From assembly GCA_965637545.1 (NCBI GenBank), contig OZ281501.1, positions 3,472,001 to 3,536,000 of the forward strand: a DNA stretch of 64,000 nt, written 5' to 3'. Below, in pieces: positions 12,561 through 36,136 of the stretch. The position numbers and the translations under genes are program-made. The notes beneath the pieces were generated by a model. The model searched no databases and was not told the DNA's origin. It was given only the letters and a program-made list of their open reading frames with translations. The stretch is from Phallusia mammillata (lineage: Eukaryota). Numbering within the stretch: the first letter of the stretch is position 1; the number at the start of each line of letters is the position of its first letter.

Positions 12561-14627
12561 AATGTAACTTATTCAAGGATTTTGAAACCTACTACCGGTT
12601 TTGGTGATTTTCCGCACACGTATTGTTTATGATTTTTGCAATAAATCGAAAAATTAAACTAGGTTATGCCACTTTACAAATAGACAGGGTTCTGGACGCA
12701 GTATTAGAAAAAAATTTCAGAATTCCCAAGTTAGGGTTAAACCTAAGTTATAAGAACCGAAACTATTGCTAAAATCCTCGCGTTTTAGTTTTACCGTTCC
12801 GGTTTTCTATTTGTGTATAACTTTTCGATTTTATCTGTAAGGTAGCAATGCAGAAAAATACTAAAAGATTCCCTAATGAAAGTTACTTACGTTCATTTTT
12901 TACGGTAAAGAGAGGCATTGAACAGAATTTGTTAATTTGAAGAGAAATCGATTGGTTAGGGCCGTAAATCTTAACCAACAGTCGAAAAACACGATTTGAG
13001 TACATTTTTATCCTCAGTGCCAGTTATAAGGCTAGGTTAAGGTAGCATACCTGTTGGCCAATTTTAAGATTTTAATTTTGTTTTTACGTGCAATGGCGAT
13101 TTAAACCAAAAGTCTATACAATTGGGTGAAGGTTAATGGATTTTTTTAAAACCCCGTGTGTGAGGGAAACTCTTTTAAATCATACTTGAAATTAAGCACA
13201 CTTTTCTAACTCGAGTGGACCGTTTTAGAGGCATTTTGCAATCTGTCATGTTTTTTTTACTCTCAATCAGGGCAAACGATTCACGTAGTTGACTTAACAT
13301 GCAGGATATTGACGTGTTGCAAACAGATACATCCAAATGAATAGAATTTCATTAACGGTGGTTCAAAATTAAATGGTTTTAGCCTAAATTGAATTTAAAA
13401 CGGTCTACAATACCCCTTGCGAAACAATCCCTCAATGGTTTGCGATTTCGGGATAATAAGGAAAAGGTCGCAAGACATTTGGCTTGGAAACTCTGTGGAC
13501 AAAACGGTCGCATTTCTTTATTGTCGTTTATGCAGTGGAAAAGAGAAACACGTAACCTTATACCCAGCTGTGGGTATTCCACGGCAGGAAATTATTTACA
13601 TAGAGACAGACTGGCATTACCGATTTCATTGAAATACCGTTCAAGGCCCTTCTGAATGGCCTTTGCTATTTGAACAAAAATCCACGGAAAACCGTATTCG
13701 CCACATCTTTGTTGACAGGTTAAATCATATGTCCTTCCTTATAGTAACTCGAACCAACTCTTCAAGCGGAGAGATGACTTGATTTGCTACACTAGTCTAT
13801 TTGATAGACATATCTTTGACAGCTCTCTGGATTACATACCTCTGTGTGGTTTGAGCATGCTATTGATGATGTCTTAACAAACAGGAAGCATACATTTGAC
13901 AGGCTTATATTAGCGTACAAATTACTTGGAAAGGCCAAATTACGAAAAAGCGTTGTTTGCCTGTTCATAGCTTAAAGCGCTGAACCAATAATGCTTAACG
14001 ATAGGGCAGCCGACAGTTCAATTAGCTCAATTGTTCAACTGGGTGGTTAAGTTTTTTAAGGTTTGTTTTCGTTTTGTTTAATGTTGTTTTACTCAATGGT
14101 CGTCTGCATGTAATTGTTATTGTATTTGAAGGCCGTTCTCAAAAAGTCGCAAATCCATTTGAAACGTTTTGTAGAATATATTTGAAATATTTAGATACAT
14201 TTAGATATTGGCAAGTATCTTCTTACTAAAAGTGTGCTTCATCCGTTCTCAACAGGCTATTTTAAAATTGCTGCAATTGTTCTAAACTTAGAGAGACAAT
14301 GTTTACAAGTAGGGTGTTTTTGGCAGGTTTTTCTTGATGCATATTTAGCTTTCAAGACGTGCGTATAAACCACAATCGACAAACGAATGCGGTAATGCAA
14401 GAGGTTGTGTTTATAATGTGGTTTGAAGGATTTGCGTGCGAAATATCTAAAGGGATTTTTCACGTTTTGTTAGACAATTTAAATAGACTGGGCCCAACCA
14501 TACAGAGTCACAGTTTACGTTAAAATATCTTAGGCTAGGTCAGGCGCAATATAACCAAAGTTGAGGAACAAACGCTTTGAGTAAAGTTTCTTTACACTTT
14601 GCCAAATTGGTAAGAAACTTCGTAAGT

Positions 14628-15123
14628 CAGGGGTGTCCAACACGTGTCACGCGTGCTAAAAGTGGCACGCAGAGCATTTGAAAATGGCACGCAAGTTTTT
14701 GCACATTCAGATGGTAAACATTAGGATTTGTCAGGCAATTAATATTTTTCTATTGATTTTTTTTGGCCTTTATTCTAACTTCAGTAAAGATGATCAGTAT
14801 CAAGGTTACACAAATCCATTAATTAAATTGGTCGTTTTTAGACTCGATCAGTTTACTTTTAGGCGTTTGAAACTGTCGAATTCTTGTTCATTTCGGGCCT
14901 TTATGCTGTCGTATTATATTCCATGTTATGGATTCTGCGCTTTAATTACATGGCATGCTATAAATAGTTTCTGGAGTATCATAAACATGTTTACTCGCGT
15001 TTGACAACTTTTCTACCGTTAAGACGTTTAAGACATGGTTTGGAAAAAGTACCAAACGTTGGCACGCGAGTATATTTTAAAACCTAGATTGGCACGGCGG
15101 TGCTTTCGAGTTAGACACCCCCG
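14628..15123. mobile_element. hAT-type MITE, 496 bp (unit 1)
   Basis: TIR CAGGGGTGTCCAAC ... GTTAGACACCCCCG (2 mismatches). TSD TCGTAAGT / ATGTAAGT. Unit 3 has the empty site with a single ATGTAAGT (~30708-30715). Confidence 0.88.
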
Positions 15124-15947
15124 ATGTAAGTAATATTTTCAGTGATTGGTGTAATTCGACACAAAATACTTGTTTGCAAGTGAAAATAACAATAACTAGT
15201 GCTGTTAAGCGCAATTATGTTCTTATGTCTCACACCAGATACGTTTGCTATATACCGCTTTCGCGAATATTTAAAACGTAATTTGTGTAAAATTGCTGAC
15301 GGTTTGGGCTATTAAGGTTGGGATGAGGTTTTATAATAAAAATAACAATAAAATCAACCTTAAAACTTAGTTCCTATAACGTTAAATTTAGTTTTTAACC
15401 ATAACCTAGCCTCAATGTTAATTTAAATACCCGCGCTCTTTAGGCCATCTATCGGTATTTAGCAAACCTTTCTACTGTGAGTTATCGTGTTAGTAGCTCT
15501 ACCGTGTTTTACCCTTTGCTGCAAAATGATTTCTGTGGGCCATGTTTCATGTTTACCGTTTTGCGCAAATACGTTGGTCTTGTGGAATTTTGTTATTGAC
15601 CTTTTGTTGATTTTATTATGACGTATAGTTACGTAACACACCACTCATTTGTGTATCATAGATTTGCGCTCCCTACAAAATCGAACCAGTGGCAAATTGA
15701 ATATTACGAGTTATAAATATAACTTAAGAGTTTTTCGGTTTCAACGAAATGGTGTAAAAATGTTGGGCAAAGCCGAAAGTACGGACAATTCAAAACTATT
15801 CAACAAGCATCATCCCTTTCACACTTACATTAGCAATAAAAAGTGTTATGTGACTCAGAAGGGATGATTTGTTGAAATATTCGTAATAAGTCTACATAAC
15901 TATATCTATTATATCGTTATTGTTTATGCAAAAATAAATTTTTTCAG

Positions 15948-16044
15948 CTTCAGAGAGATTTTTTAACTGCTTAAGTATTTGCTTTGATTCGGACCAAGAA
16001 ACGAACGATTTTTTCAATCCGAGAAACGGAGGATTTATTCTCAG
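15948..16044 (+). other. Putative non-coding 5' UTR exon of GPCR copy 1 (equivalents ~23747-23843 and ~31184-31284)
   Basis: TTTTCAG acceptor and GTGAGC donor are retained in all three units, including the diverged unit 3. A second acceptor, TATTTTAG, lies immediately before the signal-peptide ATG. Confidence 0.4.
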
Positions 16045-16333
16045 GTGAGCTATTTTAAACACGACTGTGGTAGTATAGAACTATAATTCAATAGAAAAAA
16101 CATCACTTTGCCGTAACGCAATGTCTACTCTAGGAGTTTATATCATATATTAGTGTAAAAATGTGAAGTAAATCCTGCTCGCAAAATGTCACTTTAAGTA
16201 AAAACGAATACAAGACTATGTTTACCAGAAATACACACAGAGATGCGCCAAAGTTCTAATGGGATTCATTTAGATTGTTTTTGCTTGGTAATAACGGGTT
16301 AATAAATGCTTATTTGTTTGTTCTATTTTAGCA

Positions 16334-19300
16334 ATGAAGATGAATTGGAGTACACTCTTTCTTATCAGCTTATTGTTTGGGGTTCTAAACGCAGCAACAG
16401 AAACTTCATCTAAACTGACTGATCAGAAAGGTATTTGCGACTGTGTATGTGTAAAGTTGTTGTTGTTGTTTGAATTGTGGCTCGTTTTAGTAGGCGCTAA
16501 AATCTTGTCATCATAAATTAGGCTATATGGTTTTGGCTGAATAATTTGGCGCGCCTGACCCATATACAGACATACAAACTCGGTGTTAATTCTTTTGCAA
16601 TAAATTGTGTTAAAATGTTTACCTTTATCAATTGCCAAAATAAAGTCCCGAACGAAATTATGTTGCAGTTGATGCCCAAAAATAAGAACAATGTTAAAAT
16701 CGACCAAACTTTTAAAATATACGAGTGTATGTTGAAAATATATTCGTTAAATTTACCTCTAAAATTACATTAATTTTTCTTTTTTAGGTGATTTATGCAA
16801 CGGTCCATACGACATTATCACGTGCACTTGTCCAGATACCATGTTTAGCTGCGCATGCAGAGAAATTGGTAAATGCAAATGGGGATCTGGGTGCATCCCA
16901 ACAGTATGGCGATACGACAGCATCAATCACTGTGGCGAGTGGAGCGATGAAATAAACTGTCTCCCTGAGGACATCTTCTGCGCATGCGCAAACACCTCTG
17001 AAGGATGCGGTACGGGACGGAAGTGCTACACCAAAGATGAACGCTGCGATGGTAGAGCAGATTGTCATGATGGAAGTGACGAAATGAACTGCACTTGCAG
17101 CTCTGATCAGGTCCCTTGTGAAGGTTACGGTTACGTTGACTCAGTTGCAACACCGTGCATTCATTACACATATATAAACAACAATTACAACGATTGTGGA
17201 GATTGGGGAGACGAACCGAACCTAACTTGCCCAGAGGAGGATTTCAAATGCGATTGTTTTGGCAACGATGACTGTTATGAAGGGTGTGTGGCAAGCGACT
17301 CGAAATGCAATGGTATTCTAGACTGTAGTGACGAAAGTGATGAACGTAACTGCCCGTGTCCTGACAGTACGTTTCGATGTCCATGCGCAAATGCTCTAAC
17401 ATGCCCATTTTCGCCTTGCTATCCTGAAACTTGGCGTTGTAACGGAAGGGGAGACTGTGGTGATTGGAGTGATGAATTAAACTGCACTTGCAAGTCAGAG
17501 CAGTTTGCTTGTGATTGCTACGCCAACCCCGCGACTTGTACAACCAAGCAAGGTTGTATTAGTTTGTCTAAAAGGTGCGACGGTAATCCAGACTGCCAGG
17601 ATGGGGAGGATGAACTGAACTGTACGTGTGACATGTATCAATGCGCTTGTTTTGATAAAAAGTGTTATCCCAATGGATGCATTTCTGTAAATCAGGAGTG
17701 CAACGGCTTTAACGACTGTGGAGACTGGAGCGACGAAGTTAATTGCGACGATATGGCAAAAACTTTCCAGTGCTTGTCTTGCAAGGACAATTGTAGCATC
17801 GAAAATCACCAGCGCATAGAACAGTCACAAGTTTGCAATGGAAAAGCTGATTGTGCTGACGCTAGCGATGAAGCCATCTGCGACTGCAACAATGCTGCCA
17901 GTATTTTGCAATGTGATAACGGAGGTTGCATTCCTGATCGTTGGATTCAGGGAATACTCAATTACTGTAATCTTGGAGGTAACCCAGCTTGTAAAAGGAC
18001 AAACGCGTGGTGTGGCTCAGCTCCTATCTCGATTTGGGATTGCACAGGTCCTTTGGAATTGTTATCATCTATTAACGCAATGCGTATATATGGACATAAA
18101 TGTTCCAGTACAAATCCGGTTTGTGTTGAAAAATGGAGAATTGTCAGTAATCATAGCCAAGAATGTGATGGGCTTTTCCAGTGTGAAGACGGATCGTTTA
18201 TTAACAACCGCTTCTTTTGTGACGTCAACAATGACGTTGATGCTTCTTGTAATGACGACAGCGATGAACTTTGCGGTGGCTTCGGTTTTCAGTGTGCTGG
18301 TCCAAGCAGGAAGGCAGTTTGCATATTACCACAGGCCAATGTTTACGATTCTGAGGCTCAATGTTCTGACCGATCCGATCTTTGCTTCGAAAATGGCGAG
18401 TTTCGGTGTTTTCAATGCTTGGACAAAAAGTTGATTATCTCGCCCAAGCAAGTATGCGACGGTGTAGTCAATTGCTACGATATGTCCGACGAATGCTTAT
18501 GCGCAAACACAACAATCTGCGACGAACTAAGAGGATCATGCTCCCGCAATGAAATTCGCTGTAACGATAACTGTGTTGACATGGGAACAACGCTTTGTAA
18601 TTCATCAGTTGATTGCAGCGGTTTGAACACAAAGTACTGCAGTTGCCATCAAGGTGCAGGCGAAACCATGACATGCAACACTGGAAAGGATCTTAAAATA
18701 GCGCTAAAATGTGACGGGAACCCTGAATGTCTCTTATTTGAGGACGAATGTGAAGCATGTGCACAACCAGCCGCATTTTGTGACCATCCTTGCGTCAATG
18801 AAATCAGAGACATGTGGAAAAACCACCAACAGACAAGCGACGTACGGTTTTGTGACGGCTTGGTTGAGGAGATTTACGGCACCAAACATACTCGAGACTG
18901 TCCTCTTGCGGGGGAACAATTCTGTAACGCGTCTCGTTTTTACTGCATGCGTGCGGATCCTTTAAGCGTTAGTATAAGCATCAATGAAGTGTGCGACGGA
19001 AAAAATGACTGTGACGACGGTTCAGACGAGGAACAGTCACTGTGCAAGGAGTATGTAATGCTATGCGCTGATGGAGAGAAAAACATATCCAAATTACGCG
19101 AGTGCGATGGTGTGTTTGACTGTAAAGATCTTTCGGACGAATCTAAGCAACTCTGCAGCAAAAAACGTTTCGTTTGTGCTTCAGGCAACGTTTTCTCTAT
19201 CGAGATTTCTTTGCTGGAAGACGGAAAGCCGGACTGCGAAGATGGAAGTGACGAATGTGTTTCTCTCTTCTCAGACCGCTACGAAATGATTTCTTCTTCA

Positions 19301-20434
19301 CTATTTCGGGCGTGTTTCTGGATAATGGGGTTTACCGCCTTGCTCGGAAATGCGGCTGTATTCACATCTACAATCAATTTTCTGCTCACCACCAACGCCG
19401 TGCCCAACACCACAAAATGCGCAAACATGTTCATTTTAAACCTTTCTATCGCTGATTTCCTAATGGGGGTATATCTTATAAGCATTGTGTCTGTCGGTGT
19501 AACGTTTCAGGGTGAATATTGTGCTCATGACAAAGTATGGAGGTCAAGTCCTACCTGTTCCCGTTTAGGCGCATTAGCAATTGTCTCTTCTGAGGCATCC
19601 GCATTTACTATGACAGCAATGACCACATATCGATTTATTTCAGTTTACCAACCGTTTACAGCAAAACACATGGACTTTCGTAAAGTAACAGCATTGTCAA
19701 CAGTGACTGCTTGGGGGCTGGCTGGATTACTTGGAGCAGTGCCTCTTTTCAAATCCAAAATCGAGTATTTTCAATGGGACATTTGGTTTCCAAACTATTT
19801 CTTTGGTAAGCAAGTAGTGGAAGTTAAATCTATGATTGGTTTGGCAAAGAAAATCTCAAACTCAACATTGAGCAGCTGGGTAGAGTCAAAACATGTTATT
19901 TCTGAATCCTTTCCGGGTTCAATACGAGGCGAGTTTGGTTATTACGGAGAAACAAGCGTCTGTATGCCGCGCCTGTTTGCCACTTCGAATCAAGGGGCTT
20001 GGGAATATTCGACGTTTATCATCACAATTAACTTTGTTATGTTTCTTTACGTGTTCTTTGTTTACGCCTTCATTTACAAGGAAGGAAACAGAATGAGCCA
20101 ATACCGAAATTCAGATATTAGCGTGAAAATGCAAAAACGCATTTTTCGGCTCATACTGACAGATTTTTGTTGCTGGATTCCTATTTGCATCATGGGGTAT
20201 CTCAGTGTATTTGGTGTAGAAATGCCACCCGATGCTTATGTTGCTAGTGCATGTATTTTGCTACCAATTAACAGTGCAATTAATCCTATGTTGTACTCCA
20301 GAGTCATTGGACAAAGAATAGCGAAATCTAAGCGCTATTTAAGCCAAAAAACGTCTTACACACTGAACTACGTCAGGGGCAATAGCTCATCTAAAACACA
20401 ATCGTCGGTTAAAATTGAGCTTGAAACCCCTTAA
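16334..20434 (+). CDS. LDLa-repeat class A GPCR (LGR/RXFP-like 7TM, no LRR), copy 1, ~1247 aa
   Basis: Exon 16334-16430 encodes signal peptide MKMNWSTLFLISLLFGVLNA; phase-1 intron; exon 16788-20434. About 14 clear and up to ~18 LDLa-like modules (CDG..DC.D.SDE), then 7 TM helices with motifs LLGN, LNLSIADFLMGVYL, W..S..C, SSEAS, SVCMP, TDFCCWIP, LPINSAINP.LY. Confidence 0.93.
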
Positions 20435-20910
20435 AAGCAGATGGAAGTGTTGTAAGCACAATTAGTCCAAAACATCATAAAGCTAGGGCGACTAATGTAG
20501 TGTTTGCCTACTGTTGTTTTGGTGCTATGACTAGGTTTTTCTGCGTTTGTATGCATGTACAATTTTTCAGAAAAGTCTTCATTGACCACATACATTTTTT
20601 CAGCAAAGTTCGATTTGTTTGGTACTTTTTAACTAAGTTTAAAAATTTGCAACGTTTTTTTTGTACAAACTGTTTCCGTGGGTCATTTTATTCACATATG
20701 TGTAATTATTTCCTGAAGTTTTTGCGCAATGTATGCTGTAAAAATTCTGAATTCTGTATTTGTTGTGTACATTGTTTTCACAGTTATAAACCAAGCGTTT
20801 GTAATGAAACTGTAGTCTCTGAAACTTTAAAGGATAATTCGTGGTCTTTAAAACATTTTTCTAAACTATTGCAATTTTATCAGACATTAGACAAATTACT
20901 TTTCCGTAAA

Positions 20911-20916
20911 AATAAA
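20911..20916 (+). terminator. Candidate AATAAA poly(A) signal of GPCR copy 1 (equivalents 28697-28702 and 36579-36584)
   Basis: AATAAA ~480 nt after the stop codon, conserved in all three units. AT-rich background lowers confidence. Confidence 0.35.
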
Positions 20917-21181
20917 GTAGAGACATGAAAAACAAAACTATCGGAATTATATTTTTTTTTCCGTAACTATAAGCTTAGCTCATGACAACGGGAAATATAA
21001 GGGGATTTTTTGGCACGATTTTTAAAATCTGCTATTGTTATTTGTTTATCTTTTTTACTATAACGAAACAAACAATTTTCGGGGAAAACGCATGAAAGAC
21101 TATAGTATCAGTGTTGCATAACAACCCGTCTTCACATTTAAACACTAGAGGAATTTAGTGGACTGGATTTAATCAGTTAAC

Positions 21182-21512
21182 ATGGAAAACACACATAAGG
21201 TATTTATTTCTCAAATTTTATGTTTGCAAATTAAATTATTTAATATTTCAAGCCAGAACTAAAGGGGTAATGATAGTGCAAGTTTATTAATCTCCGTTAT
21301 ACTAAACACCTTAAAACTTTTATCATATTATTATTTAAGGCATGTGGAGTACTAAAAATCTAAAAAAACTAAAATGTAATTTTTTTTGAAAATAAGCATC
21401 ATTTAAACATTTCTTGTTGATTATATGTTGTCAAAGTAAAATGACTGTTTTAATCTTTGATTAGCTGTCCCTTGATGTTGATCTAAATGAGGATTTGCTT
21501 GATTACGGTTGA
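21182..21512 (+). pseudogene. Truncated 5' duplicate of MAD2L1BP (exon 1 plus the start of exon 2), unit 1
   Basis: ATGGAAAACACACATAAG|GT at 21182-21199, acceptor GATTAG at 21464, then LSLDVDLNEDLLDYG* running across the array junction. Confidence 0.85.
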
Positions 21513-22426
21513 AATTGAGTTCACTTTTCTAACTCGAATAAACCGCTATTGAGGCATTTTGCAATATGTCATGTTTTGACTTGATTTGCTACACTAGTCT
21601 ATTTGATAGACATATCTTTGACAGCTCTTTGGATTACAGACCTCTGTGTTGTTTGAGCATGCTGTTGATGATGTCTTAACAAACAGGAAGCATACATTTG
21701 ACAGGCTTATATTAGCGCACAAATTACTTGGAAAGGCCAAATTACGAAAAAGCGTTGTTTGCCTGTTGATAGCTTAAAGCGCTAAACCAATAATGCTTAC
21801 CGATAGGGCAGCCGACAGTTCAATTAGCATAATTGTTCAACTGGGTGGTTAAGTTTTTTAAGGTTTGTTTTCGTTTTGTTTAATGTTGTTTTACTCAATG
21901 GTCGTCTGCATGTTGTTATTGTATTTGAAGGCCGTTTTCAAAAAGTCGCAAATCCGTTTGAAACGTTTTGTAGAATATATTTGAAATGTTTAGATACATT
22001 TAGATATTGGCAAGTATCTTCTTACTAAAAGTGTGCTTCATCCGTTCTCAACAGGCTATTTTAAAATTGTTGCAATTGTTCTAAACTTAGAGAGACAATG
22101 TTTACAAATAGGGTGTTTTTGGCAGGTTTTTCTTGATGCATATTTAGCTTTCAAGACGTGCGTATAAACCACAATCGACAAACGAATGCGGTAATGCAAA
22201 AGGTTGTGTTTATAATGTGGTTTGAAGGATTTGCGTGCAAAATATCTAAAGGGATTTTTCACGTTTTGTTAGACAATTTAAATAGACTGGGCCCAACCAT
22301 ACAGAGTCACAGTTTACGTTAAAATATCTTAGGCTAGGTCAGGCGCAATATAACCAAAGTTGAGGAACAAACGCTTTGAGTAAAGTTTCTTTACACTTTG
22401 CCAAATTGGTAAGAAACTTCGTAAGT

Positions 22427-22922
22427 CAGGGGTGTCCAACACGTGTCACGCGTGCCAAAAGTGGCACGCAGAGCATTTGAAAATGGCACGCAAGTTTTTG
22501 CACATTCAGATGGTAAACATTAGGATTTGTCAGGCAATTAATATTTTTCTATTGATTTTTTTTGGTCTTTATTCTAACTTCAGTAAAGATGATCAGTATC
22601 AAGGTTACACAAATCCATTAATTAAATTGGTCGTTTTTAGACTCGATCAGTTTACTTTTAGGCGTTTGAAACTGTCGAATTCTTGATCATTTCGGGCCTT
22701 TATGCTGTCGTATTATATTCCATGTTATGGATTCTGCGCTTTAATTACATGGCATGCTATAAATAGTTTCTGGAGTATCATAAACATGTTTACTCGCGTT
22801 TGACAACTTTTCTACCGTTAAGACGTTTAAGACATGGTTTGGAAAAAGTACCAAACGTTGGCACGCGAGTATATTTTAAAACCTAGATTGGCACGGCGGT
22901 GCTTTCGAGTTAGACACCCCCG
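22427..22922. mobile_element. hAT-type MITE, 496 bp (unit 2; duplicated copy of 14628-15123)
   Basis: Same TIRs, TSD and position as in unit 1. Confidence 0.88.
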
Positions 22923-24132
22923 ATGTAAGTAATATTTTCAGTGATTGGTGTAATTCGACACAAAATACTTGTTTGCAAGTGAAAATAACAATAACTAGTG
23001 CTGTTAAGCGCAATTATGTTCTTATGTCTCACACCAGATACGTTTGCTATATACCGCTTTCGCGAATATTTAAAACGTAATTTGTGTAAAAATGATGACG
23101 GTTTGGGCTATTAGGGTTGGGATGAGGTTTTATAATAAAAATAACAATAAAATCAACCTTAAAACTTAGTTCCTATAACGTTAAATTTAGTTTTTAACCA
23201 TAACCTAGCCTCAATGTTAATTTAAATACCCGCGCTCTTTAGGCCATCTATCGGTATTTAGCAAACCTTTCTACTGTGAGTTATCGTGTTAGTAGCTCTA
23301 CCGTGTTTTACCCTTTGCTGCAAAATGATTTCTGTGGGCCATGTTTCATGTTTACCGTTTTGCGCAAATACGTTGGTCTTGTGGAATTTTGTTATTGACC
23401 TTTTGTTGATTTTATTATGACGTACAGTTACGTAACACACCACTCATTTGTGTATCATAGATTTGCGCTTCCTACAAAATCGAACCAGTGGCAAATTGAA
23501 TATTACGAGTTATAAATATAACTTAAGAGTTTTTCGGTTTCAACGAAATGGTGTAAAAATGTTGGGCAAAGCCGAAAGTACGGACAATTCAAAACTATTC
23601 AACAAGCATCATCCCTTTCACACTTACATTAGCAATAAAAAGTGTTATGTGACTCAGAAGGGATGATTTGTTGAAATATTCGTAATAAGTCTACATAACT
23701 ATATCTATTATATCGTTATTGTTTATGCAAAAATAACTTTTTTCAGCTTCAGAGAGATTTTTTAACTGCTTAAGTATTTGCTTTGATTCGGACCAAGAAA
23801 CGAACGATTTTTTCAATCCGAGAAACAGAGGATTTATTCTCAGGTGAGCTATTTTAAACACGACTGTGGTAGTATAGAACTATAATTCAATAGAAAAAAC
23901 ATCACTTTGCCGTAACGCAATGTCTACTCTAGGAGTTTATATCATATATTAGTGTAAAAATGTGAAGTAAATCCTGCTCGCAAAATGTCACTTTAAGTAA
24001 AAACGAATACAAGACTATGTTTACCAGAAATACACACAGAGATGCGCCAAAGTTCTAATGGGATTCATTTAGATTGTTTTTGCTTGGTAATAACGGGTTA
24101 ATAAATGCTTATTTGTTTGTTCTATTTTAGCA

Positions 24133-27100
24133 ATGAAGATGAATTGGAGTACACTCTTTCTTATCAGCTTATTGTTTGGGGTTCTAAACGCAGCAACAGA
24201 AACTTCATCTAAACTGACTGATCAGAAAGGTATTTGCGACTGTGTATGTGTAAAGTTGTTGTTGTTGTTTGAATTGTGGCTCGTTTTAGTAGGCGCTAAA
24301 ATCTTGTCATCATAAATTAGGCTATATGGTTTTGGCTGAATAATTTGGCGCGCCTGACCCATATACAGACATACAAACTCGGTGTTAATTCTTTTGCAAT
24401 AAATTGTGTTAAAATGTTTACCTTTATCAATTGCCAAAATAAAGTCCCGAACGAAATTATGTTGCAGTTGATGCCCAAAAATAAGAACAATGTTAAAATC
24501 GACCAAACTTTTAAAATATACGAGTGTATGTTGAAAATATATTCGTTAAATTTACCTCTAAAATTACATTATTTTTTCTTTTTTAGGTGATTTATGCAAC
24601 GGTCCATACGACATTATCACGTGCACTTGTCCAGATACCATGTTTAGCTGCGCATGTAGAGAAATTGGTAAATGCAAATGGGGTTCTGGGTGCATCCCAA
24701 CAGTATGGCGAAACGACAGCATCAATCACTGTGGCGAGTGGAGCGATGAAATAAACTGTCTCCCTGAGGACATCTTCTGCGCATGCGCAAACACCTCTGA
24801 AGGATGCGGTTCGGGACGGAAGTGCTACACCAAGGATGAACGCTGCGATGGTAGTGCAGATTGTCATGATGGAAGTGACGAAATGAACTGCACTTGCAGC
24901 TCTGATCAGGTCCCTTGTGAAGGTTACGGTTACGTTGACTCAGTTGCAACACCGTGCATTCATTACACATATATAAACGACAATTACAACGATTGTGGAG
25001 ATTGGGGAGACGAACCGAACCTAACTTGCCCAGAGGAGGATTTCAAATGCGATTGTTTTGGCAACGATGACTGTTATGAAGGGTGTGTGGCAAGCGATTT
25101 GAAATGCAACCATATTCCAGACTGTAGTGACGGAAGTGATGAACGTAACTGCCCGTGTCCTGACAGTACGTTTCGATGTCCATGCGCAAATGCTCTAACA
25201 TGCCCATTTTCGCCTTGCTATCCTGAAACTTGGCGTTGTAACGGAAGGGGAGACTGTGGTGATTGGAGTGATGAATTAAACTGCACTTGCAAGTCAGAGC
25301 AGTTTGCTTGTGATTGCTACGCCAACCCCGCGACTTGTACAACCAAGCAAGGTTGTATTAGTTTGTCTAAAAGGTGCGACGGTAATCCAGACTGCCAGGA
25401 TGGGGAGGATGAACTGAACTGTACGTGTGACATGTATCAATGCGCTTGTTTTGATAAAAAGTGTTATCCCAATGGATGCATTTCTGTAAATCAGCAGTGC
25501 AACGGCTTTAACGACTGTGGAGACTGGAGCGACGAAGTTAATTGCGACGATATGGCAAAAACTTTCCAGTGCTTGTCTTGCAAGGACAATTGTAGCATCG
25601 AAAATCACCAGCGCATAGAACAGTCACAAGTTTGCAATGGAAAAGCTGATTGTGCTGACGCTAGCGATGAAGCCATCTGCGACTGCAACAATGCTGCCAG
25701 TATTTTGCAATGTGATAACGGAGGTTGCATTCCTGATCGTTGGATTCAGGGAATACTCAATTACTGTAATCTTGGAGGTAACCCAGCTTGTAAAAGGACA
25801 AACGCGTGGTGTGGCTCAGCTCCTATCTCGATTTGGGATTGCACAGGTCCTTTGGAATTGTTATCATCTATTAACGCAATGCGTATATATGGACATAAAT
25901 GTTCCAGTACAAATCCGGTTTGTGTTGAAAAATGGAGAATTGTCAGTAATCCAAGCCAAGAATGTGATGGGCTTTTCCAGTGTGAAGACGGATCGTTTAT
26001 TAACAACCGCTTCTTTTGTGACGTCAACAATGACGTTGGTGCTTCTTGTAATGACGACAGCGATGAACTTTGCGGTGGCTTCGGTTTTCAGTGTGCTGGT
26101 CCAAGCAGGAAGGCAGTTTGCATATTACCACAGGCCAATGTTTACGATTCTGAGGCTCAATGTTCTGACCGATCCGATCTTTGCTTCGAAAATGGCGAGT
26201 TTCGGTGTTTTCAATGCTTGGACAAAAAGTTGATTATCTCGCCCAAGCAAGTATGCGACGGTGTAGTCAATTGCTACGATATGTCCGACGAATGCTTATG
26301 CGCAAACACAACAATTTGCGACGAACTAAGAGGATCATGCTCCCGCAATGAAATTCGCTGTAACGATAACTGTGTTGACATGGGAACAACGCTTTGTAAT
26401 TCATCAGTTGATTGCAGCGGTTTGAACACAAAGTACTGCAGTTGCCATCAAGGTGCAGGCGAAACCATGACATGCAACACTGGAAAGGATCTTAAAATAG
26501 CGCTAAAATGTGACGGGAACCCTGAATGTCTCTTATTTGAGGACGAATGTGAAGCATGTGCACAACCAGCCGCATTTTGTGACCATCCTTGCGTCAATGA
26601 AATCAGAGACATGTGGAAAAACCACCAACAGACAAGCGACGTGCGGTTTTGTGACGGCTTGGTTGAGGAGATTTACGGCACCAAACATACTCGAGACTGT
26701 CCTCTTGCGGGGGAACAATTCTGTAACGCGTCTCGTTTTTACTGCATGCGTGCGGATCCTTTAAGCGTTAGTATAAGCATCAATGAAGTGTGCGACGGAA
26801 AAAATGACTGTGACGACGGTTCAGACGAGGAACAGTCACTGTGCAAGGAGTATGTAATGCTATGCGCTGATGGAGAGAAAAACATATCCAAATTACGCGA
26901 GTGCGATGGTGTGTTTGACTGTAAAGATCTTTCGGACGAATCTAAGCAACTCTGCAGCAAAAAACGTTTCGTTTGTGCTTCAGGCAACGTTTTCTCTATC
27001 GAGATTTCTTTGCTGGAAGACGGAAAGCCGGACTGCGAAGATGGAAGTGACGAATGTGTTTCTCTCTTCTCAGACCGCTACGAAATGATTTCTTCTTCAC

Positions 27101-28233
27101 TATTTCGGGCGTGTTTCTGGATAATGGGGTTTACCGCCTTGCTCGGAAATGCGGCTGTATTCACATCTACAATCAATTTTCTGCTCACCACCAACGCCGT
27201 GCCAAACACCACAAAATGCGCAAACATGTTCATTTTAAACCTTTCTATCGCTGATTTCCTAATGGGGGTATATCTTATAAGCATTGTGTCTGTCGGTGTA
27301 ACGTTTCAGGGTGAATATTGTGCTCATGACAAAGAATGGAGGTCAAGTCCTACCTGTTCCCGTTTAGGCGCATTAGCAATTGTCTCTTCTGAGGCATCCG
27401 CATTTACTATGACAGCAATGACCACATATCGATTTATCTCAGTTTACCAACCGTTTACAGCAAAACACATGGACTTTCGTAAAGTAACAGCATGGTCAAC
27501 AGTGACGGCTTGGGGGTTCGCTGGATTACTTGGAGCAGTGCCTCTTTTCAAATCCAAAATCGAGTATTTTCAATGGGACATTTGGTTTCCAAACTATTTC
27601 TTTGGTAAGCAAGTAGTGGAAGTTAAATCTATGATTGGTTTGGCAAAGAAAATCTCAAACTCAACATTGAGCAGCTGGGTAGAGTCAAAACATGTTATTT
27701 CTGAATCCTTTCCGGGTTCAATACGAGGCGAATTTGGTTATTACGGAGAAACAAGCGTCTGTATGCCGCGCCTGTTTGCCACTTCGAATCAAGGGGCTTG
27801 GGAATATTCGACGTTTATCATCACAATTAACTTTGTTATGTTTCTTTACGTGTTCTTTGTTTACGCCTTCATTTACAAGGAAGGAAACAGAATGAGCCAA
27901 TACCGAAATTCAGATATTAGCGTGAAAATGCAAAAACGCATTTTTCGGCTCATACTGACAGATTTTTGTTGCTGGATTCCTATTTGCATCATGGGGTATC
28001 TCAGTGTATTTGGTGTAGAAATGCCACCCGATGCTTATGTTGCTAGTGCATGTATTTTGCTACCAATTAACAGTGCAATTAATCCTATGTTGTACTCCAG
28101 AGTCATTGGACAAAGAATAGCGAAATCTAAGCGCTATTTAAGCCGAAAAACGTCTTACACACTAAACTACGTCAGGGGTAATAACTCATCTAAAACACAA
28201 TCGTCGGTTAAAATTGAGCTTGAAACCCCTTAA
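24133..28233 (+). CDS. LDLa-repeat class A GPCR, copy 2, ~1247 aa
   Basis: Exons 24133-24229 and 24587-28233; intact frame; differs from copy 1 at about 17 residues. Confidence 0.93.
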
Positions 28234-28960
28234 AAGCAGATGGAAGTGTTGTAAGCACAATAAGCCCAAAACATTACAAAATTAAGGCGAATAATGTAGT
28301 GTTTGCCTACTGTTGTTTTGGTGCAATGACTAGGTTTCCATATTTTTAATAAAAAGCCTTTATTAACTACAAACATGCTTCAGCAATAAAATTCGATTTG
28401 TTTGATACTTTGTTACTAAGTTTAAAAATTTGCAATGTATTTTTTTGTACAAACTGTTTCCGTGGGTCATTTTATTCACATATGTGTACTTCATTTGCTG
28501 AAAGTTTGTGCGCAATGTATGCTGTAAAAATTCTGTTTTCTGTATTTGTTGTGTACATTGTTACCACAGTTTTGAAACAAGCGTTTGTACTGAAAGTGTG
28601 TAGTCTCCGATTCTTTTAGGTATAATTTGTGGCCTTTAAGACATTTTTGAAATATCGCAATATTATCAGACATTAGAGAACTTACTTTTCCGTAAAAATA
28701 AAGTGGAGACATGAAAAACAAAACTATCGGAATTATAATATCTTTGCGGTAACTATAAGCTTAGCTCATGACAACGGGAAATATAAGGGGATTTTTTGGC
28801 ACGATTTTTAAAATCTGCCATTGTTATTTGTTTATCTTATAACGAAACAAAAAGATTTCGGGGAAAACGCATAAAAACTATACTATCAGTGTTGCGAAAC
28901 AACCCGTTATCGCATTTTAAACTCTAGAGGAATTTAGTGGAGTGGATTTAATTAGTTAAC

Positions 28961-29290
28961 ATGGAAAACACACATGAGGTATTTATTTCTCAAATTTTAT
29001 GTTTGTAAATTAAATTATTTAATATTTCAAGCCAGAACTAAAGGGGTAATGATAGTGCAAGTTTATTAACCTCCATTATACTAAACACCTTAAAACTTTT
29101 ATCATATTATTATTTAAGGCATGTGGAGTACTAAAATTCTTAAAAAAATTAAAATGTATTTTTTTGAAAATAAGCATCATTTAAACGTTTCTTGTTGATT
29201 ATATGTTGTAAAAATGAAATGACTGTTTTAATCTTTGATTAGCTGTTCCTTAATGTTGATCTAAATGAGGATTTGCTTGATTACGGTTGA
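28961..29290 (+). pseudogene. Truncated 5' duplicate of MAD2L1BP, unit 2
   Basis: MENTHE|GT at 28961-28978, acceptor at 29242, then LFLNVDLNEDLLDYG*. Confidence 0.85.
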
Positions 29291-31516
29291 AATTGAGTTC
29301 ACTTTTATAACTCGAAAGAACCGCTATTGAAGCATTTTGTAATATGTCATGTTTTTTCCTCTGCTCATTCTGGGCAAACGGATCAATTACTTGACTTTAC
29401 ATGCAGAAAATTGACGTGTTGCAAACAGATACATCCAAATGAATAGAATTTCATTTATGGCCGTTATAAATTAAATGGTTTTAGTCTAAATTGAATTTGA
29501 AACCGTTTACAATATCCCTTGCAAAACAATCCCTCAATGGATTGCGTTTTCGGGATAATAGGAAAAGGTCGCAAGACATTTGACCTGGAAACCCTGTGGA
29601 CAAAACGGTCGAATTTCTTTATTGTCGTTTATGCAGTGGAAAATAGAAACGCGTAACCTTATACCCAGCTATGGGTTTTTCACGACAGGAAAATCTTTAC
29701 ATGGAGACAGGCTGACATTAGCGCTTTCCTTGAAATACCGTTCAAGACCCGCCCGAATGGCCTTTGCTATTTGAGCAAAAATCTACAGAAAACCGTATTC
29801 GCCAACTGTGTTGACAGGTGGAATCATATGTCCTTCCTTAAGAGTAACTCGAATAAACTCTTAAGTGTAGTGATGGCTTGATGTGCTACACTAGTCTATT
29901 TGATAGACATATCTTTGACAGCTCTCTGGATTACAGACCTCTGTGCGGTTTGAGCATGCTATTGATGATGTCTTAGCAAACAGGAAGCTTGCATTCGACA
30001 AGCTTATATATAAGCTATATTGGCGCACAAATTACTTGGAAGGGCCAAATTACGAAAAATTGTTGTTTGCCTGTTTATAGCTTAAAGCGCTAAACCAATA
30101 ATGCTTAACGATAGGGCAGCCGACAGGTTCAACTGTTTGGTTAAGTTTTATAATGTTTGTGTTCGTTTTGTTTGACAGTTGTTTACTCAATGGTCGCATG
30201 CATTGTTTTCATTGTATTTGAAAGCCGTTTTCAAAAAGTCGCAAATCAATTTGAAACGTTTTTTAGAATATTTTTGAAATATGTATGTACACTCAGATAT
30301 TGCCTAGTATCTTTTTGCTAAAAGTGTGCTTCATCTGTTTCAAAACCGCGCCATTGCTCAATGGGCTATTTTTTAAATAGTTGCAATTGTTATAAAACTA
30401 GAGAGACAGTGTTCGCTTAGGGTGTTTTTAAGCGGTTTTTCTTAATGCATATTTAGCTTTTAAGACGTACGTATAAACCACAATCGACATACGTACGTGG
30501 TAATGCAAGAGGTTATGTTTGTAATGTGGCTTGAAGGATTTGCGTGCAAAATATCTAAAGGGTTTTTCCACGTTTTGTTAGACCATTTAAATAGACTTGG
30601 CCCAACCATGCAGAGTCGCAGTTTACGTTAAAATATCGTAGGCGAGGTCAGGTGCAATATAACTTTGATTAGAGTTTCTTTACACTTTGCCAAAATGGTA
30701 AGAAAAAATGTAAGTAATATGTTCAGTGACAGGTGTAATTCGATAAAAAACATGTGAGTTATCGTGCTAGTAGCTCCGCCGTGTTTTACCCTTTGCTGCT
30801 ATATATGATTTCTGTGGGGAATATTTCATGTTTACCGTTTTGCGCAAATGCGTTGGTCCTGTGGAATTTTGTTATTGACCTTCTGTTGATTTTATTATGA
30901 CGTACAGTTACGTAACAAACCGCGAAGTTGTGTATCAAAAGTTTGTGCTCCCCACAAAATCTGACCAGTGGCAAATGGAATATTACGAGTTATAAATATA
31001 ACTTAAGAGTCGTTTTTTGGGTTTCAAATGAATGGTGCAAAATTGTTGGGCGTTGCCAAAAGACCGGACCATTTAAAGGTGTTATGTGACTCAGAAGGGA
31101 TGATTTGTTGAAATAATCGTAATAAGTCCACATAACTATATCTATTATATTTTTATTGTTTATGCAAAAATAACTTTTTCCAGCTTTAGAGAGATTTTTT
31201 TTAACTGCTAAAGTGTTTGCTTTGATTCGGACTAAGAAAAGGACGATTTTTTCAATCCAAGAAACCAAGAGAAATCATTTTTGGGTGAGCTAATTTAAAA
31301 CACGACTGTGGAAGTATAGAAATGCAATTCAATAGAAAATAAAATCATGTTGGCGTAACTCAATGCGTTTCTAGGGATTTATATCATACATTAATGTGAA
31401 AATTTGGAGTAAGTCCTTATCGCAAAATGCCACTTTAAGTAAAAAATAATACAAGACAAAGTTTACGGGAAACACACACAGAGACGCGCCAAAGTTAAAA
31501 TGCGATTCATTTAGAT

Positions 31517-31940
31517 CAGTGGTTCCCAAACTTTTTCATATTTTTTTCAAAACGGTCCCTTTGCCATTATTTCGAGGGCTCGCGGTCCTTAAGCCTAAAT
31601 GTGTATTTCATAAAAAACGAATATTGATTGCAGGATTTTAGTTAGTTATGCAAAATTGCACATAACAATCATCTAAAGACAGCACGTGACATCACAAACA
31701 GGACAAAAAACATTACAATTGTGCGCGAACAATTGCTTTTTTGATAGTTGTCATTCAATAAAGGCCATTGTTTAGCAATGGAGACAGTCGATTCTCAATT
31801 CTACTTTGATTTAAACTTATTTAGTGGCACAATTACTGACGCCAAATAAGATTATAGAATTTCTTCAACCGCTTCGCGGTCCCTCCAAAATTGCCTCACG
31901 GACCCCTAAAGGACCGCGGACCCCAGTTTGGGAACCGCTG
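31517..31940. mobile_element. hAT-type MITE, 424 bp, specific to unit 3
   Basis: TIRs CAGTGGTTCCCAAACT ... AGTTTGGGAACCGCTG. Perfect TSD ATTTAGAT. Units 1 and 2 have the empty site (CATTTAGATTGTT, ~16268 and ~24067). Confidence 0.95.
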
Positions 31941-32012
31941 ATTTAGATTGTTTTTGCATGGTTATAACGGGTTAATAAATGCTTATTTGTTTGTTCCATT
32001 TTAGCAACAAAG

Positions 32013-35000
32013 ATGAATTGGAGAACACACTTCCTTATCTGCCTATTGTTTGGGGTTCTAAACGAAGCAACAGAAACTTCGCCTAAGTTGACAGATCAGA
32101 AAGGTAATTGCGACTGTGTATGTGTAAAGTTGTTTAAACTCGAGGCTCGCTTTGGTGAGCTATAGGTGGCTCTATTTTCATGTCACCATAAATTATATAG
32201 TTTTGGCCGAATAGTTCGGGGCGCCTGACCCATATACAGACATACAAACACCGTGTTATTTTTTTACAATAAATTGTGTTAAAATGTTTACCTTTACCAA
32301 TTGCCAAAATAAAATCGAGAAAAATTAGTTGTGTTGCAGTTGTTGCCAAAAGTTAAAATAATGTTAAAATCAACAAACGTTCAAAATATACTGGTGTATG
32401 GGGAAAATATATTCGTTAAATTTACCTCTAAATTTACTTGATTATTTTTCTCTTGACAGGTGATTTATGCAACGGTCCATACGACAATATCACGTGCACT
32501 TGTCCGGATACCATGTTTAGCTGCGCATGCAGAGAAATTGGTAAATGCAAATGGGGATCTGGGTGCATCCCAACAGTATGGCGAAGTGACAGCATCAATC
32601 ACTGTGGCGAGTGGAGCGATGAAATAAACTGTCTCCCTGAGGACATCTTCTGCGCATGCGCAAACACCTCTGAAGGATGCGGTACGGGACGGAAGTGCTA
32701 CACCAAGCATGAACGCTGCGATGGTAGTGCGGATTGTCATGATGGAAGTGACGAAATGAACTGCACTTGCAGCTCTAAACAGGTCCCTTGTGAAGGTTAC
32801 GGATACGTTGACTCAGTTACAACACCGTGCATTGATTACACATATATAAACGACAATTACAACGATTGTGGAGATTGGGGAGACGAGCTGAACCTAACTT
32901 GCCCAGAGGAGGATTTCAAATGCGATTGTTATGGCAAAGATGACTGTTATAAAGGGTGTGTGGCAAGCGACTCGAAATGCAACCATATTCCAGACTGTAG
33001 TGACGGAAGTGATGAACGTAACTGTCCGTGTCCTGACAGTACGTTTCGATGTCCATGCGCAAATGCTCTAACATGCCCATTTTCGCCTTGCTATCCTGAA
33101 ACTTGGCGTTGTAACGGAAGGGGAGACTGTGGTGATTGGAGTGATGAATTAAACTGCACTTGCAAGTCAGAGCAGTTTGCTTGTGATTGCTACGCCAACC
33201 CCGCGACTTGTACAACCAAGCAAGGTTGTATTAGTTTGTCTAAAAGGTGCGACGGTAATCCAGACTGCCAGGATGGTGAGGATGAACTGAACTGTACGTG
33301 TGACATGTATCAATGCGCTTGTTTTGATAAAAAGTGTTATCCCAATGGATGCATTTCTGTAAATCAGCAGTGCAACGGCTTTAACGACTGTGGAGACTGG
33401 AGCGACGAAGTTAATTGCGACGATATGGCAAAAACTTTCCAGTGCTTGTCTTGCAAGGACAATTGTAGCATCGAAAATCACCAGCGCATAGAACAGTCAC
33501 AAGTTTGCAATGGAAAAGCTGATTGTGCTGACGCTAGCGATGAAGCCATCTGCGACTGCAACAATGCTGCCAGTATTTTGCAATGTGATAACGGAGGTTG
33601 CATTCCTGATCGTTGGATTCAGGGAATACTCAATTACTGTAATCTTGGAGGTAACCCAGCTTGTAAAAGGACAAACGCGTGGTGTGGCTCAGCTCCTATC
33701 TCGATTTGGGATTGCACAGGTCCTTTGGAATTGTTATCATCTATTAACGCAATGCGTATATATGGACATAAATGTTCCAGTACAAATCCGGTTTGTGTTG
33801 AAAAATGGAGAATTGTCAGTAATCATAGCCAAGAATGTGATGGGCTTTTCCAGTGTGAAGACGGATCGTTTATTAACAACCGCTTCTTTTGTGACGTCAA
33901 CAATGACGTTGATGCTTCTTGTAATGACGACAGCGATGAACTTTGCGGTGGCTTCGGTTTTCAGTGTGCTGGTCCAAGCAGGAAGGCAGTTTGCATATTA
34001 CCACAGGCCAATGTTTACGATTCTGAGGCTCAATGTTCTGACCGATCCGATCTTTGCTTCGAAAATGGCGAGTTTCGGTGTTTTCAATGCTTGGACAAAA
34101 AGTTGATTATCTCGCCCAAGCAAGTATGCGACGGTGTAGTCAATTGCTACGATATGTCCGACGAATGCTTATGCGCAAACACAACAATCTGCGACGAACT
34201 AAGAGGATCATGCTCCCGCAATGAAATTCGCTGTAACGATAACTGTGTTGACATGGGAACAACGCTTTGTAATTCATCAGTTGATTGCAGCGGTTTGAAC
34301 ACAAAGTACTGCAGTTGCCATCAAGGTGCAGGCGAAACCATGACATGCAACACTGGAAAGGATCTTAAAATAGCGCTAAAATGTGACGGGAACCCTGAAT
34401 GTCTCTTATTTGAGGACGAATGTGAAGCATGTGCACAACCAGCCGCATTTTGTGACCATCCTTGCGTCAATGAAATCAGAGACATGTGGAAAAACCACCA
34501 ACAGACAAGCGACGTGCGGTTTTGTGACGGCTTGGTTGAGGAGATTTACGGCACCAAACATACTCGAGACTGTCCTCTTGCGGGGGAACAATTCTGTAAC
34601 GCGTCTCGTTTTTACTGCATGCGTGCGGATCCTTTAAGCGTTAGTATAAGCATCAATGAAGTGTGCGACGGAAAAAATGACTGTGACGACGGTTCAGACG
34701 AGGAACAGTCACTGTGCAAGGAGTATGTAATGCTATGCGCTGATGGAGAGAAAAACATATCCAAATTACGCGAGTGCGATGGTGTGTTTGACTGTAAAGA
34801 TCTTTCGGACGAATCTAAGCAACTCTGCAGCAAAAAACGTTTCGTTTGTGCTTCAGGCAACGTTTTCTCTATCGAGATTTCTTTGCTGGAAGACGGAAAG
34901 CCGGACTGCGAAGATGGAAGTGACGAATGTGTTTCTCTCTTCTCAGACCGCTACGAAATGATTTCTTCTTCACTATTTCGGGCGTGTTTCTGGATAATGG

Positions 35001-36136
35001 GGTTTACCGCCTTGCTCGGAAATGCGGCTGTATTCACATCTACAATCAATTTTCTGCTCACCACCAACGCCGTGCCCAACACCACAAAATGCGCAAACAT
35101 GTTCATTTTAAACCTTTCTATCGCTGATTTCCTAATGGGGGTATATCTTATAAGCATTGTGTCTGTCGGTGTAACGTTTCAGGGTGAATATTGTGCTCAT
35201 GACAAAGAATGGAGGTCAAGTCCTACCTGTTCCCGTTTAGGCGCATTAGCAATTGTCTCTTCTGAGGCATCCGCATTTACTATGACAGCAATGACCACAT
35301 ATCGATTTATCTCAGTTTACCAACCGTTTACAGCAAAACACATGGACTTTCGTAAAGTAACAGCATGGTCAACAGTGACGGCTTGGGGGTTCGCTGGATT
35401 ACTTGGAGCAGTGCCTCTTTTCAAATCCAAAATCGAGTATTTTCAATGGGACATTTGGTTTCCAAACTATTTCTTTGGTAAGCAAGTAGTGGAAGTTAAA
35501 TCTATGATTGGTTTGGCAAAGAAAATCTCAAACTCAACATTGAGCAGCTGGGTAGAGTCAAAACATGTTATTTCTGAATCCTTTCCGGGTTCAATACGAG
35601 GCGAATTTGGTTATTACGGAGAAACAAGCGTCTGTATGCCGCGCCTGTTTGCCACTTCGAATCAAGGGGCTTGGGAATATTCGACGTTTATCATCACAAT
35701 TAACTTTGTTATGTTTCTTTACGTGTTCTTTGTTTACGCCTTCATTTACAAGGAAGGAAACAGAATGAGCCAATACCGAAATTCAGATATTAGCGTGAAA
35801 ATGCAAAAACGCATTTTTCGGCTCATACTGACAGATTTTTGTTGCTGGATTCCTATTTGCATCATGGGGTATCTCAGTGTATTTGGTGTAGAAATGCCAC
35901 CCAATGCTTATGTTGCTAGTGCATGTATTTTGCTACCAATTAACAGTGCAATTAATCCTATGTTGTACTCCAGAGTCATTGGACAAAGAATAGCGAAATC
36001 TAAGCGCTATTTAAGCCGAAAAACGTCTTACACACTGAACTACGTCAGGGGTAATAGCTCATCTAAAACACAATCGTCGGTTAAAATTGAGCTTGAAACC
36101 CCTCAAAACAGATGGAAGTGTTGTAAGCACAATTAG
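32013..36136 (+). CDS. LDLa-repeat class A GPCR, copy 3, ~1255 aa
   Basis: Exon 32013-32103 (MNWRTHFLICLLFGVLNEATETSPKLTDQK) and exon 32460-36136. The first ATG is lost. The stop is replaced by CAA, adding QNRWKCCKHN. Confidence 0.92.

Follow-up and report, generated by a model that had tools for sequence, protein, structure and literature searches.

Between the tandem copies of a receptor gene in the ascidian Phallusia mammillata lie two truncated copies of the 5′ end of the neighboring p31comet (MAD2L1BP) gene, which we refer to as cassettes or stubs. They occur in a stretch of 64,000 nucleotides (contig OZ281501.1 of assembly GCA_965637545.1, forward-strand positions 3,472,001 to 3,536,000), hereafter the window, whose positions are counted from its first base; all features are on the plus strand unless stated otherwise. 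We conclude, with a probability of roughly 0.7, that the two cassettes are ordinary relics of partial gene duplication, left within an array that evolves by gene conversion. Dead-end copies of p31comet stand between the receptors because the duplicated block ended inside p31comet. An earlier account of this DNA, prepared from the letters alone (the sequence-only reading), had instead raised the possibility that the cassettes serve the downstream receptors as captured promoters, contribute chimeric 5′ untranslated regions (UTRs) or encode a micropeptide.

The duplicated block ends inside p31comet exon 2

Self-alignment of the window, which contains no runs of N, revealed a tandem triplication with units of ~7.8-8.3 kb and one receptor gene per unit. 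Unit 1 occupies 13183-21503, unit 2 occupies 21504-29281 and unit 3 occupies 29282-37172, past which the sequence is unique. Overall, units 1 and 2 are 97.6% identical. At its left boundary in unit 1 (13183-13260), the duplicated block starts with TAC, a 3-base match to the breakpoint sequence of p31comet exon 2. Past the exon-2 cut, both junctions continue with the same ~74 bases, which match this left end. The same novel joint, ...TTGAT/TACGGTTGAAATTGAG (the slash marking the junction), is thus found at both unit boundaries, at 21501 and 29279, with the left end of unit 1 at 13183. When the whole assembly was searched with the cassette DNA, exactly three copies were recovered, at 100, 91 and 88% identity, and both partial copies stop at the same breakpoint base. 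With its repeated junction and a complete parent at the end of the array, the arrangement has the hallmarks of partial gene duplication by tandem segmental duplication.

The units also carry indels of their own. Approximately 515 bases (13260-13775 of unit 1) are missing near the start of unit 2, at 21577, and kept in units 1 and 3; a further indel of ~900 bases (14555-15476) is present in units 1 and 2 and missing from unit 3. In an independent DNA run from 2018 (X2), one contig joins position 29355 to 29877 through an intervening GA and thereby captures the unit 1-to-2 junction together with its 515-base deletion. Other contigs of this run sit on the unit-3-specific flank with few differences.

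Behind each receptor stop codon, the order is the same: a 3′ UTR of ~480 bases with an AATAAA signal (20911, 28697 and 36579), ~267 bases of upstream sequence and then p31comet exon 1. In cassette 1, the upstream region (putative promoter and 5′ UTR) spans 20917-21181 and is followed by exon 1 (21182-21199, encoding MENTHK), with its GT donor kept, by intron 1 (21200-21464) and by an exon-2 stub of 13 codons (21465-21503) that runs on through TAC GGT to a TGA stop at 21510-21512. An AATAAA signal lies at 21537, 25 bases past this stop. Cassette 2 is built in the same manner, with an upstream region at 28703-28960, exon 1 at 28961-28978 (encoding MENTHE), intron 1 at 28979-29242 and a 13-codon exon-2 stub at 29243-29281, in which a serine is changed to phenylalanine and an aspartate to asparagine, again followed by TAC GGT and a TGA stop at 29288-29290. 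Exon 1 and its donor read ATGGAAAACACACATAAG/GT at 21182 and 36852 and ATGGAAAACACACATGAG/GT at 28961, giving a consensus over the three copies of ATGGAAAACACACAT(A/G)AG followed by GT. In every copy, intron 1 measures ~264 bases, retains the acceptor ...GATTAG and closes with ...TTTGATTAG, and exon 2 begins CTGTCCCTTGATG... before it is cut in units 1 and 2. Once spliced, the two stubs would give open reading frames (ORFs) of 21 amino acids, MENTHKLSLDVDLNEDLLDYG (21182-21512) and MENTHELFLNVDLNEDLLDYG (28961-29290). The native exon-2 donor is lost in both. Judged from these features, a stop after 21 codons and no native donor, the stubs have no protein-coding future.

This anatomy agrees with the sequence-only reading, which had each unit end with the p31comet upstream region, exon 1 as MENTHK or MENTHE, intron 1 and 13 exon-2 codons before crossing the junction into YG and a stop. 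It had likewise seen that only unit 3 runs on into the full gene and that ATG, donor and acceptor are kept in both fragments. Its estimate of a same-strand p31comet start ~3 kb before receptor copies 2 and 3 corresponds to measured distances of 2951 and 3052 bases. Its coordinates needed only minor correction: the ATG of the true gene is at 36852, and unit 2 lacks the ~515 starting bases.

The intact parent gene is p31comet

The complete p31comet gene lies at 36852-39199 and comprises seven coding exons (36852-36869, 37134-37269, 37440-37473, 37549-37733, 38025-38214, 38343-38463 and 38936-39199). Its intron 1 spans 36870-37133, and its upstream region, the 267 bases from the receptor AATAAA to the ATG, spans 36585-36851. 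The duplication breakpoint falls within exon 2, at 37172-37177, and the remainder of exon 2 through exon 7 is found only at 37173-39199.

We searched the exons singly and unjoined, and used a public protein as the full-length spliced sequence. This protein (P0001; CAB3262224.1 / A0A6F9DG73) is a 315-residue Phallusia mammillata entry named merely 'uncharacterized protein LOC100178824'. It was found with the open frame of exons 3 and 4 in a representative library of 1.8 billion proteins, with 97% identity over exon 4. All seven of its exons map to 36852-39199 at 97-100% identity, and its sequence equals the seven-exon model of the window exactly (MENTHK/LSLDV...RHIR/DSFTQ.../...GFKF). Against the Pfam p31comet profile PF06581, the protein scores 41.8 bits (E 9.8e-11), above the cut-off of 24.1, and the match spans residues 24-206. 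Because P0001 maps to all seven exons and passes the PF06581 cut-off, we identify the downstream gene as p31comet/MAD2L1BP, the intact, single-copy parent of the cassettes, as the sequence-only reading had named it.

Other searches were silent on this point. Pfam gave no p31comet match on single-exon translations of the downstream gene, and three exons compared with PDB sequences by phmmer returned chance matches alone. A six-frame scan of the whole genome with PF06581 yielded no candidates, the controls of that scan being equally silent. P0001 had no exact record in the contig collection, and a word search with it found only the protein itself. A contig from a related tunicate (L001), too short for exon 1 or neighbors, keeps the exon-2 acceptor and the reading LRLDIDTDEDIHDI....

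Divergence is patchy and fits gene conversion

In windows of 300 bases, identity among the three copies reaches 99-100% across the receptor coding sequence (~17.4-20.4 kb). Of the 5′ flanks, those of units 1 and 2 match each other at 99%, but either matches that of unit 3 at just 83-90%, and divergence in the non-coding 5′ flank amounts to 10-17%. Intron 1 of cassette 1 differs from the true intron by 14.8% and that of cassette 2 by 14.5%, the two cassettes differing from each other by 3.4%. It has thus diverged like neutral flank. Each of the four differences among the stub codons alters the encoded residue (K6E, S8F and D10N in cassette 2, F18L in both), and we see no evidence of constraint in the cassette sequences.

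The 267-base upstream region is less diverged. Here, cassette 1 differs from the true gene by 2.7% and cassette 2 by 7.0%, with 7.8% between the cassettes, and in both comparisons with the true gene the values are below those of the intron (Fisher p 4e-7 for cassette 1 and 0.007 for cassette 2). In the proximal 131 bases, cassette 1 differs from the true gene by only 1.6%, whereas cassette 2 differs by 10.7% with four indels, including a 7-base deletion, and the cassettes differ from one another by 10.7%. The low promoter divergence of cassette 1 appears to be explained by a conversion tract, and the low overall value of cassette 2 appears to come from its distal half, which adjoins the receptor poly(A) site needed by every copy.

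The sites at which one copy differs and two agree, given in unit 1 coordinates, fall in clean blocks. Unit 3 is the odd one out over 16262-16834 (70 sites), unit 2 over 20463-20631 (~30 sites), unit 1 over 20707-20956 (~25 sites), unit 2 again over 20960-21197 (16 sites) and unit 3 again over 21204-21510 (~38 sites). The tract at 20960-21197 covers the promoter and exon 1 of cassette 1 and ends at the border of exon 1 and intron 1. Because unit 2 still differs over this tract, conversion would have run from the true gene into cassette 1.

These patterns suggest the following history. In an old first tandem segmental duplication, a block reaching from ~3.1 kb upstream of the receptor to 39-44 bases into p31comet exon 2 would have been copied and its ends joined at the 3-base match, leaving one truncated p31comet 5′ end between two receptors. 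The joint is placed at this match because TAC occurs both at 13183 and in the intact exon 2 (37175-77). The ~15% divergence at unconstrained sites marks this event as probably the older one. A recent second duplication, by a later unequal exchange near the unit start, may then have produced the third unit and the second stub, yielding the present units 1 and 2. Conversion would have homogenized most of the receptor coding sequence in concert, and unit 3 may have donated three short tracts of ~200-250 bases to the 3′ flanks of the other two units, one of them overwriting the promoter and exon 1 of cassette 1 with the sequence of the true gene.

RNA contigs over cassette 2 and the junction

We mapped the contigs of three probable RNA runs from three studies (X11, X17 and X18), together with those of DNA run X2, on a stretch of 6000 bases (28200-34199) that spans the tail of receptor 2, cassette 2, the junction, the unit-3 flank and the head of receptor 3. 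Mapping was carried out at 90% likeness, so that RNA of cassette 1 and of the true gene would land there as well. Over cassette 2, the junction and 2 kb of unique flank (28200-31400), no contig of the three RNA runs was observed, the runs being small and this part having no positive control. The RNA contigs are confined to two repeats (31.5-31.95 kb and 32.2-32.4 kb) and to low-depth contigs of X11 on receptor exon 2 (33643-34188). Within the mapped stretch, none of them contains a joint linking the cassette to the receptor at 32005, and none covers receptor exon 1 at that position. Read-through at high levels and a long chimeric 5′ UTR are made less likely by this result, although as a negative it is weak. 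Each stub is separated from the next receptor exon by 2.6-2.7 kb that contain five or six AATAAA or ATTAAA poly(A) signals and ~50 ATGs.

The receptor copies and their flanks

The receptor gene consists of two exons, of which exon 1 encodes a signal peptide and exon 2 is 3.6 kb long. Pfam recognizes at least seven LDL-receptor class A (LDLa) modules and a rhodopsin-type seven-transmembrane (7TM) domain in all three copies. Copy 1 lies at 16332-20434 (exon 1 at 16332-16430 with its ATG at 16334, exon 2 at 16788-20434, AATAAA at 20911), copy 2 at 24131-28233 (exons at 24131-24229 and 24587-28233, AATAAA at 28697) and copy 3 at 32005-36136 (exons at 32005-32103 and 32460-36136, AATAAA at 36579). 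The near-identical portions of the receptors extend over 3 kb (17391-20391, 25190-28190 and 33063-36063), and the few differences between copies lie in the first LDLa modules (16858-17353). In copy 3, the first ATG of exon 1 is lost (CAATGAAGATG to CAACAAAGATG), and the start must be the second ATG, two codons later at 32013.

In each copy, exon 1 (16332, 24131 and 32005) opens at a strong, pyrimidine-rich acceptor, TTGTTTGTTCTATTTTAG/CA, located 2 nt before the ATG and reading ...TTGTTC(T/C)ATTTTAG/CA. This acceptor would point either to an unseen 5′ non-coding exon or to leader trans-splicing of the receptor mRNA. A word search found no near-identical public protein for the receptor, the best match having 41% identity, and there is therefore no cDNA-based model that shows its 5′ exon.

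Each receptor copy has its own upstream flank of 2.6-3.1 kb. That of unit 2 (21513-24130) is 99% identical to its counterpart in unit 1, is ~515 bases shorter and contains five AATAAA, one ATTAAA and 48 ATG before the receptor acceptor. The flank of unit 3 (29291-32004) is 83-90% identical to those of units 1 and 2, has large indels and holds a hAT-like miniature inverted-repeat transposable element (MITE) that is found in unit 3 only. This element spans 424 bases (31517-31940), lies 64 bases upstream of the receptor 3 exon-1 acceptor, and has 16-base terminal inverted repeats (CAGTGGTTCCCAAACT and AGTTTGGGAACCGCTG) and an 8-base target duplication (ATTTAGAT). It is very high-copy, with a DNA contig depth of ~25,000 compared with ~12 in the flank, and RNA contigs from other copies land on it. 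A second interspersed repeat, at 32200-32400 in receptor intron 1, has a DNA contig depth of ~1,550 and RNA contigs in two runs.

Three sites in receptor exon 2 (33825, 33826 and 33912) separate copy 2 from copies 1 and 3 in the assembly. At all three, X11 RNA contigs have the bases of unit 2. The independent DNA run, in an unbranched contig of 3.3 kb, also shows the copy-2 letters alone, and the sites are therefore polymorphic or converted, that is, shuffled between copies or individuals. Copy-specific expression calls based on these single-nucleotide polymorphisms (SNPs) are consequently unsafe; such a comparison had been suggested in the sequence-only reading, and the letters seen in X11 prove not to be diagnostic of a copy. 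The different spread of 'diagnostic' sites in another individual fits ongoing conversion.

Upstream of the array, minus-strand open frames at 658-2165 contain RGS-domain-like sequence (...FLALEFSDENLDFWIDVEEYK...). This is probably the nearest gene on that side, on the strand opposite to the array. Between 12.5 and 40 kb, Rfam returned no match.

Weighing the cassettes as inert relics

Tandem duplications whose ends fall without regard to genes, so that fragments of genes remain, form a well-described class (Rogers et al. 2017, PLoS Genet, PMC5460883), and we infer that the stubs have no function. If the 267-base region is the p31comet promoter, cassette 1, which is 97% identical to the true gene there, may still fire and give a short, spliced, dead-end RNA. 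Such an RNA would be noise and would not regulate the receptors, all of which have kept their own upstream flank.

Several observations weigh against this conclusion. Cassette 1 retains a nearly unchanged promoter region, its ATG and both splice sites of intron 1 are intact, and an AATAAA signal lies just past its stop, which makes some transcription from it quite possible. Of 43 comparable 5′-end captures in Drosophila yakuba, 30 were accompanied by new transcription of the neighboring sequence (PMC5460883). The RNA comparison draws on assembled contigs of three small runs, which carry no strand or start information, and the true p31comet gene, as a control, lies outside the mapped stretch. 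Finally, the three copies barely differ over a block of ~90 bases at ~36627-36700 that contains TATA-like motifs, and constraint rather than conversion could account for this.

Alternative readings of the cassettes

The alternative that survives best, although we consider it unlikely, had been mentioned in the sequence-only reading. In this scenario, p31comet lacks a promoter and is expressed as the second cistron of an operon shared with the receptor, such that the stubs are spare trans-splicing or 5′ UTR pieces and cannot drive anything. The receptor and p31comet do lie on the same strand, only a short distance separates the receptor AATAAA from the p31comet ATG, and operons exist in ascidians (Satou et al. 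2006, NAR, PMC1488885). In Ciona, however, the cistrons abut directly, the poly(A) site of the first lying at the acceptor of the second (PMC1488885), whereas 267 bases intervene here, and no pyrimidine-rich acceptor is present close before the p31comet ATG. Measured against ascidian spliced-leader operons, which combine a shared strand with virtually no intercistronic DNA (PMC1488885), neither the 267-base gap nor the 2.6-2.7 kb between stub and receptor conforms. In addition, a low-expressed receptor would be an unlikely driver of a cell-cycle gene, and a contig from a more distant tunicate (L002) has no such receptor within 10 kb upstream of p31comet. On these grounds, the operon is disfavored.

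Slightly less probable again is promoter capture whose trace has been erased by trans-splicing. The cassette promoters would fire and transcription would run ~2.7 kb into the next unit, where the unpaired receptor acceptor, the exon-2 donor of the stub being lost, would take the spliced leader. Copies 2 and 3 would thereby gain p31comet-like expression in an operon-like unit, with no chimeric sequence in the mRNA. Such a course is in keeping with the retention of ATG, donor, acceptor and upstream region in both stubs, on the strand of the receptor, and with the strong acceptor at which each receptor exon 1 opens. Because unpaired acceptors in ascidians take the spliced leader (PMC1488885), read-through from a stub could yield a normal-looking, leader-tagged receptor mRNA, and the 5′ gene ends placed by tandem duplications often activate the DNA beside them (PMC5460883). 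Against this, no RNA contig falls on the unique 2.1 kb that separate cassette 2 from the MITE, even in X11, the run that is positive for the receptor; the intervening DNA contains five or six poly(A) signals, one of them only 25 bases past the cassette 1 stop; the proximal promoter of cassette 2 has decayed; known Ciona operons have no intercistronic DNA (PMC1488885), compared with a gap of 2.6-2.7 kb here; and each receptor copy has kept its native flank. The promoter capture proposed in the sequence-only reading is hence unsupported, though unrefuted. Its chimeric 5′ UTR with an out-of-frame upstream ORF fares no better: the RNA contigs, themselves a weak test, contain no such joint, the exon-2 donor is lost, and poly(A) signals lie between stub and receptor. 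The broader form of this idea, in which a truncated gene 5′ end becomes a new upstream promoter of the p31comet (cell-cycle or germline) type through leader trans-splicing, so that an operon is born by partial duplication and kept alive by conversion from the live promoter, we regard as a shade more doubtful still.

We give very little credence to the proposal that the stubs produce short, spliced, polyadenylated RNAs that act as a 21-residue peptide or as a decoy or regulator of p31comet expression. Both stubs keep the 21-codon ORF and both splice sites, and cassette 1 has, besides the AATAAA at 21537, a promoter 97% identical to the true one. Nevertheless, all four coding differences change a residue, three of them in cassette 2 alone, which gives no sign of purifying selection, small as these numbers are. 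The last two residues and the stop derive from the junction sequence, and the 19 shared residues precede the p31comet profile match, which begins at residue 24 of P0001. No RNA contig was seen on cassette 2 in the three runs, a weak negative as only contigs were available. The micropeptide suggested in the sequence-only reading thus finds no support.

It is very unlikely, and we rejected it as an explanation, that the triplication is an assembly artefact, for example the tandem stacking of allelic haplotypes from a highly heterozygous animal: although allelic divergence in ascidians covers the 97.6% identity of units 1 and 2, both junctions link p31comet exon 2 to the left end of the block, a joint that allelic stacking would not yield, the two junctions differ by the 515-base deletion, the unit 3 flank is just 83-90% identical and has its own MITE, the X2 DNA sample carries both the unit 1-to-2 junction and contigs specific to the unit-3 flank, and the assembly holds no further cassette copies elsewhere.

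Relation to known systems

As inert relics, the cassettes resemble the partial gene duplicates of Rogers et al. (PMC5460883) in that the block ends inside a neighboring gene, the parent remains intact at the end of the array, and a copied 5′ end with upstream region, start codon and first intron is placed before unrelated sequence. The Drosophila cases are young, segregating and tested by RNA-seq (PMC5460883), whereas the array described here is old, with ~15% divergence, comprises three units, has been reshaped by conversion and is known from sequence. As in recruited non-coding sequence and chimeric genes (PMC5460883), the cassettes have the layout that can activate adjacent DNA, in which foreign sequence follows a promoter, an ATG and a donor in the same orientation. 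They differ from these in that no junction-crossing transcript was found among the contigs of the three RNA runs, the ORF stops two codons past the junction, and no downstream donor leads to the receptor exons. The same-strand arrangement, in a trans-splicing chordate and with an acceptor just before the receptor ATG, recalls the ascidian operons resolved by spliced leaders (PMC1488885). Those operons have no intercistronic DNA (PMC1488885), in contrast to the 2.6-2.7 kb with poly(A) signals from stub to receptor and the 267 bases from receptor to p31comet.

The near-identical coding sequence beside diverged flanks, and the two-versus-one blocks into which the variable sites fall, are also features of concerted evolution. 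The concerted evolution of tandem arrays by gene conversion and unequal crossing-over is a known process. The usual course of that process differs from what we observe here in that the tracts reach past the receptor into the promoter relic of the neighbor, where they would have refreshed a dead stub from a live gene.

Implications

The array provides a clean textbook case, with exact coordinates, of a tandem duplication that ends inside a neighboring gene. For annotation, it means that the two 21-codon stubs should not be called genes and that the near-identical receptors are best treated as one concertedly evolving unit, since the SNPs that appear to diagnose a copy vary between individuals. 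Were the stubs to drive the receptors through leader trans-splicing after all, to which no finding here points, they would offer a concrete mechanism by which operon-like units arise in tunicates. The one mildly unusual feature is the spillover of conversion from the receptor array into the promoter relic of its neighbor, by which cassette 1 appears to have been refreshed; in principle, the live p31comet promoter could likewise be overwritten by a decayed copy.

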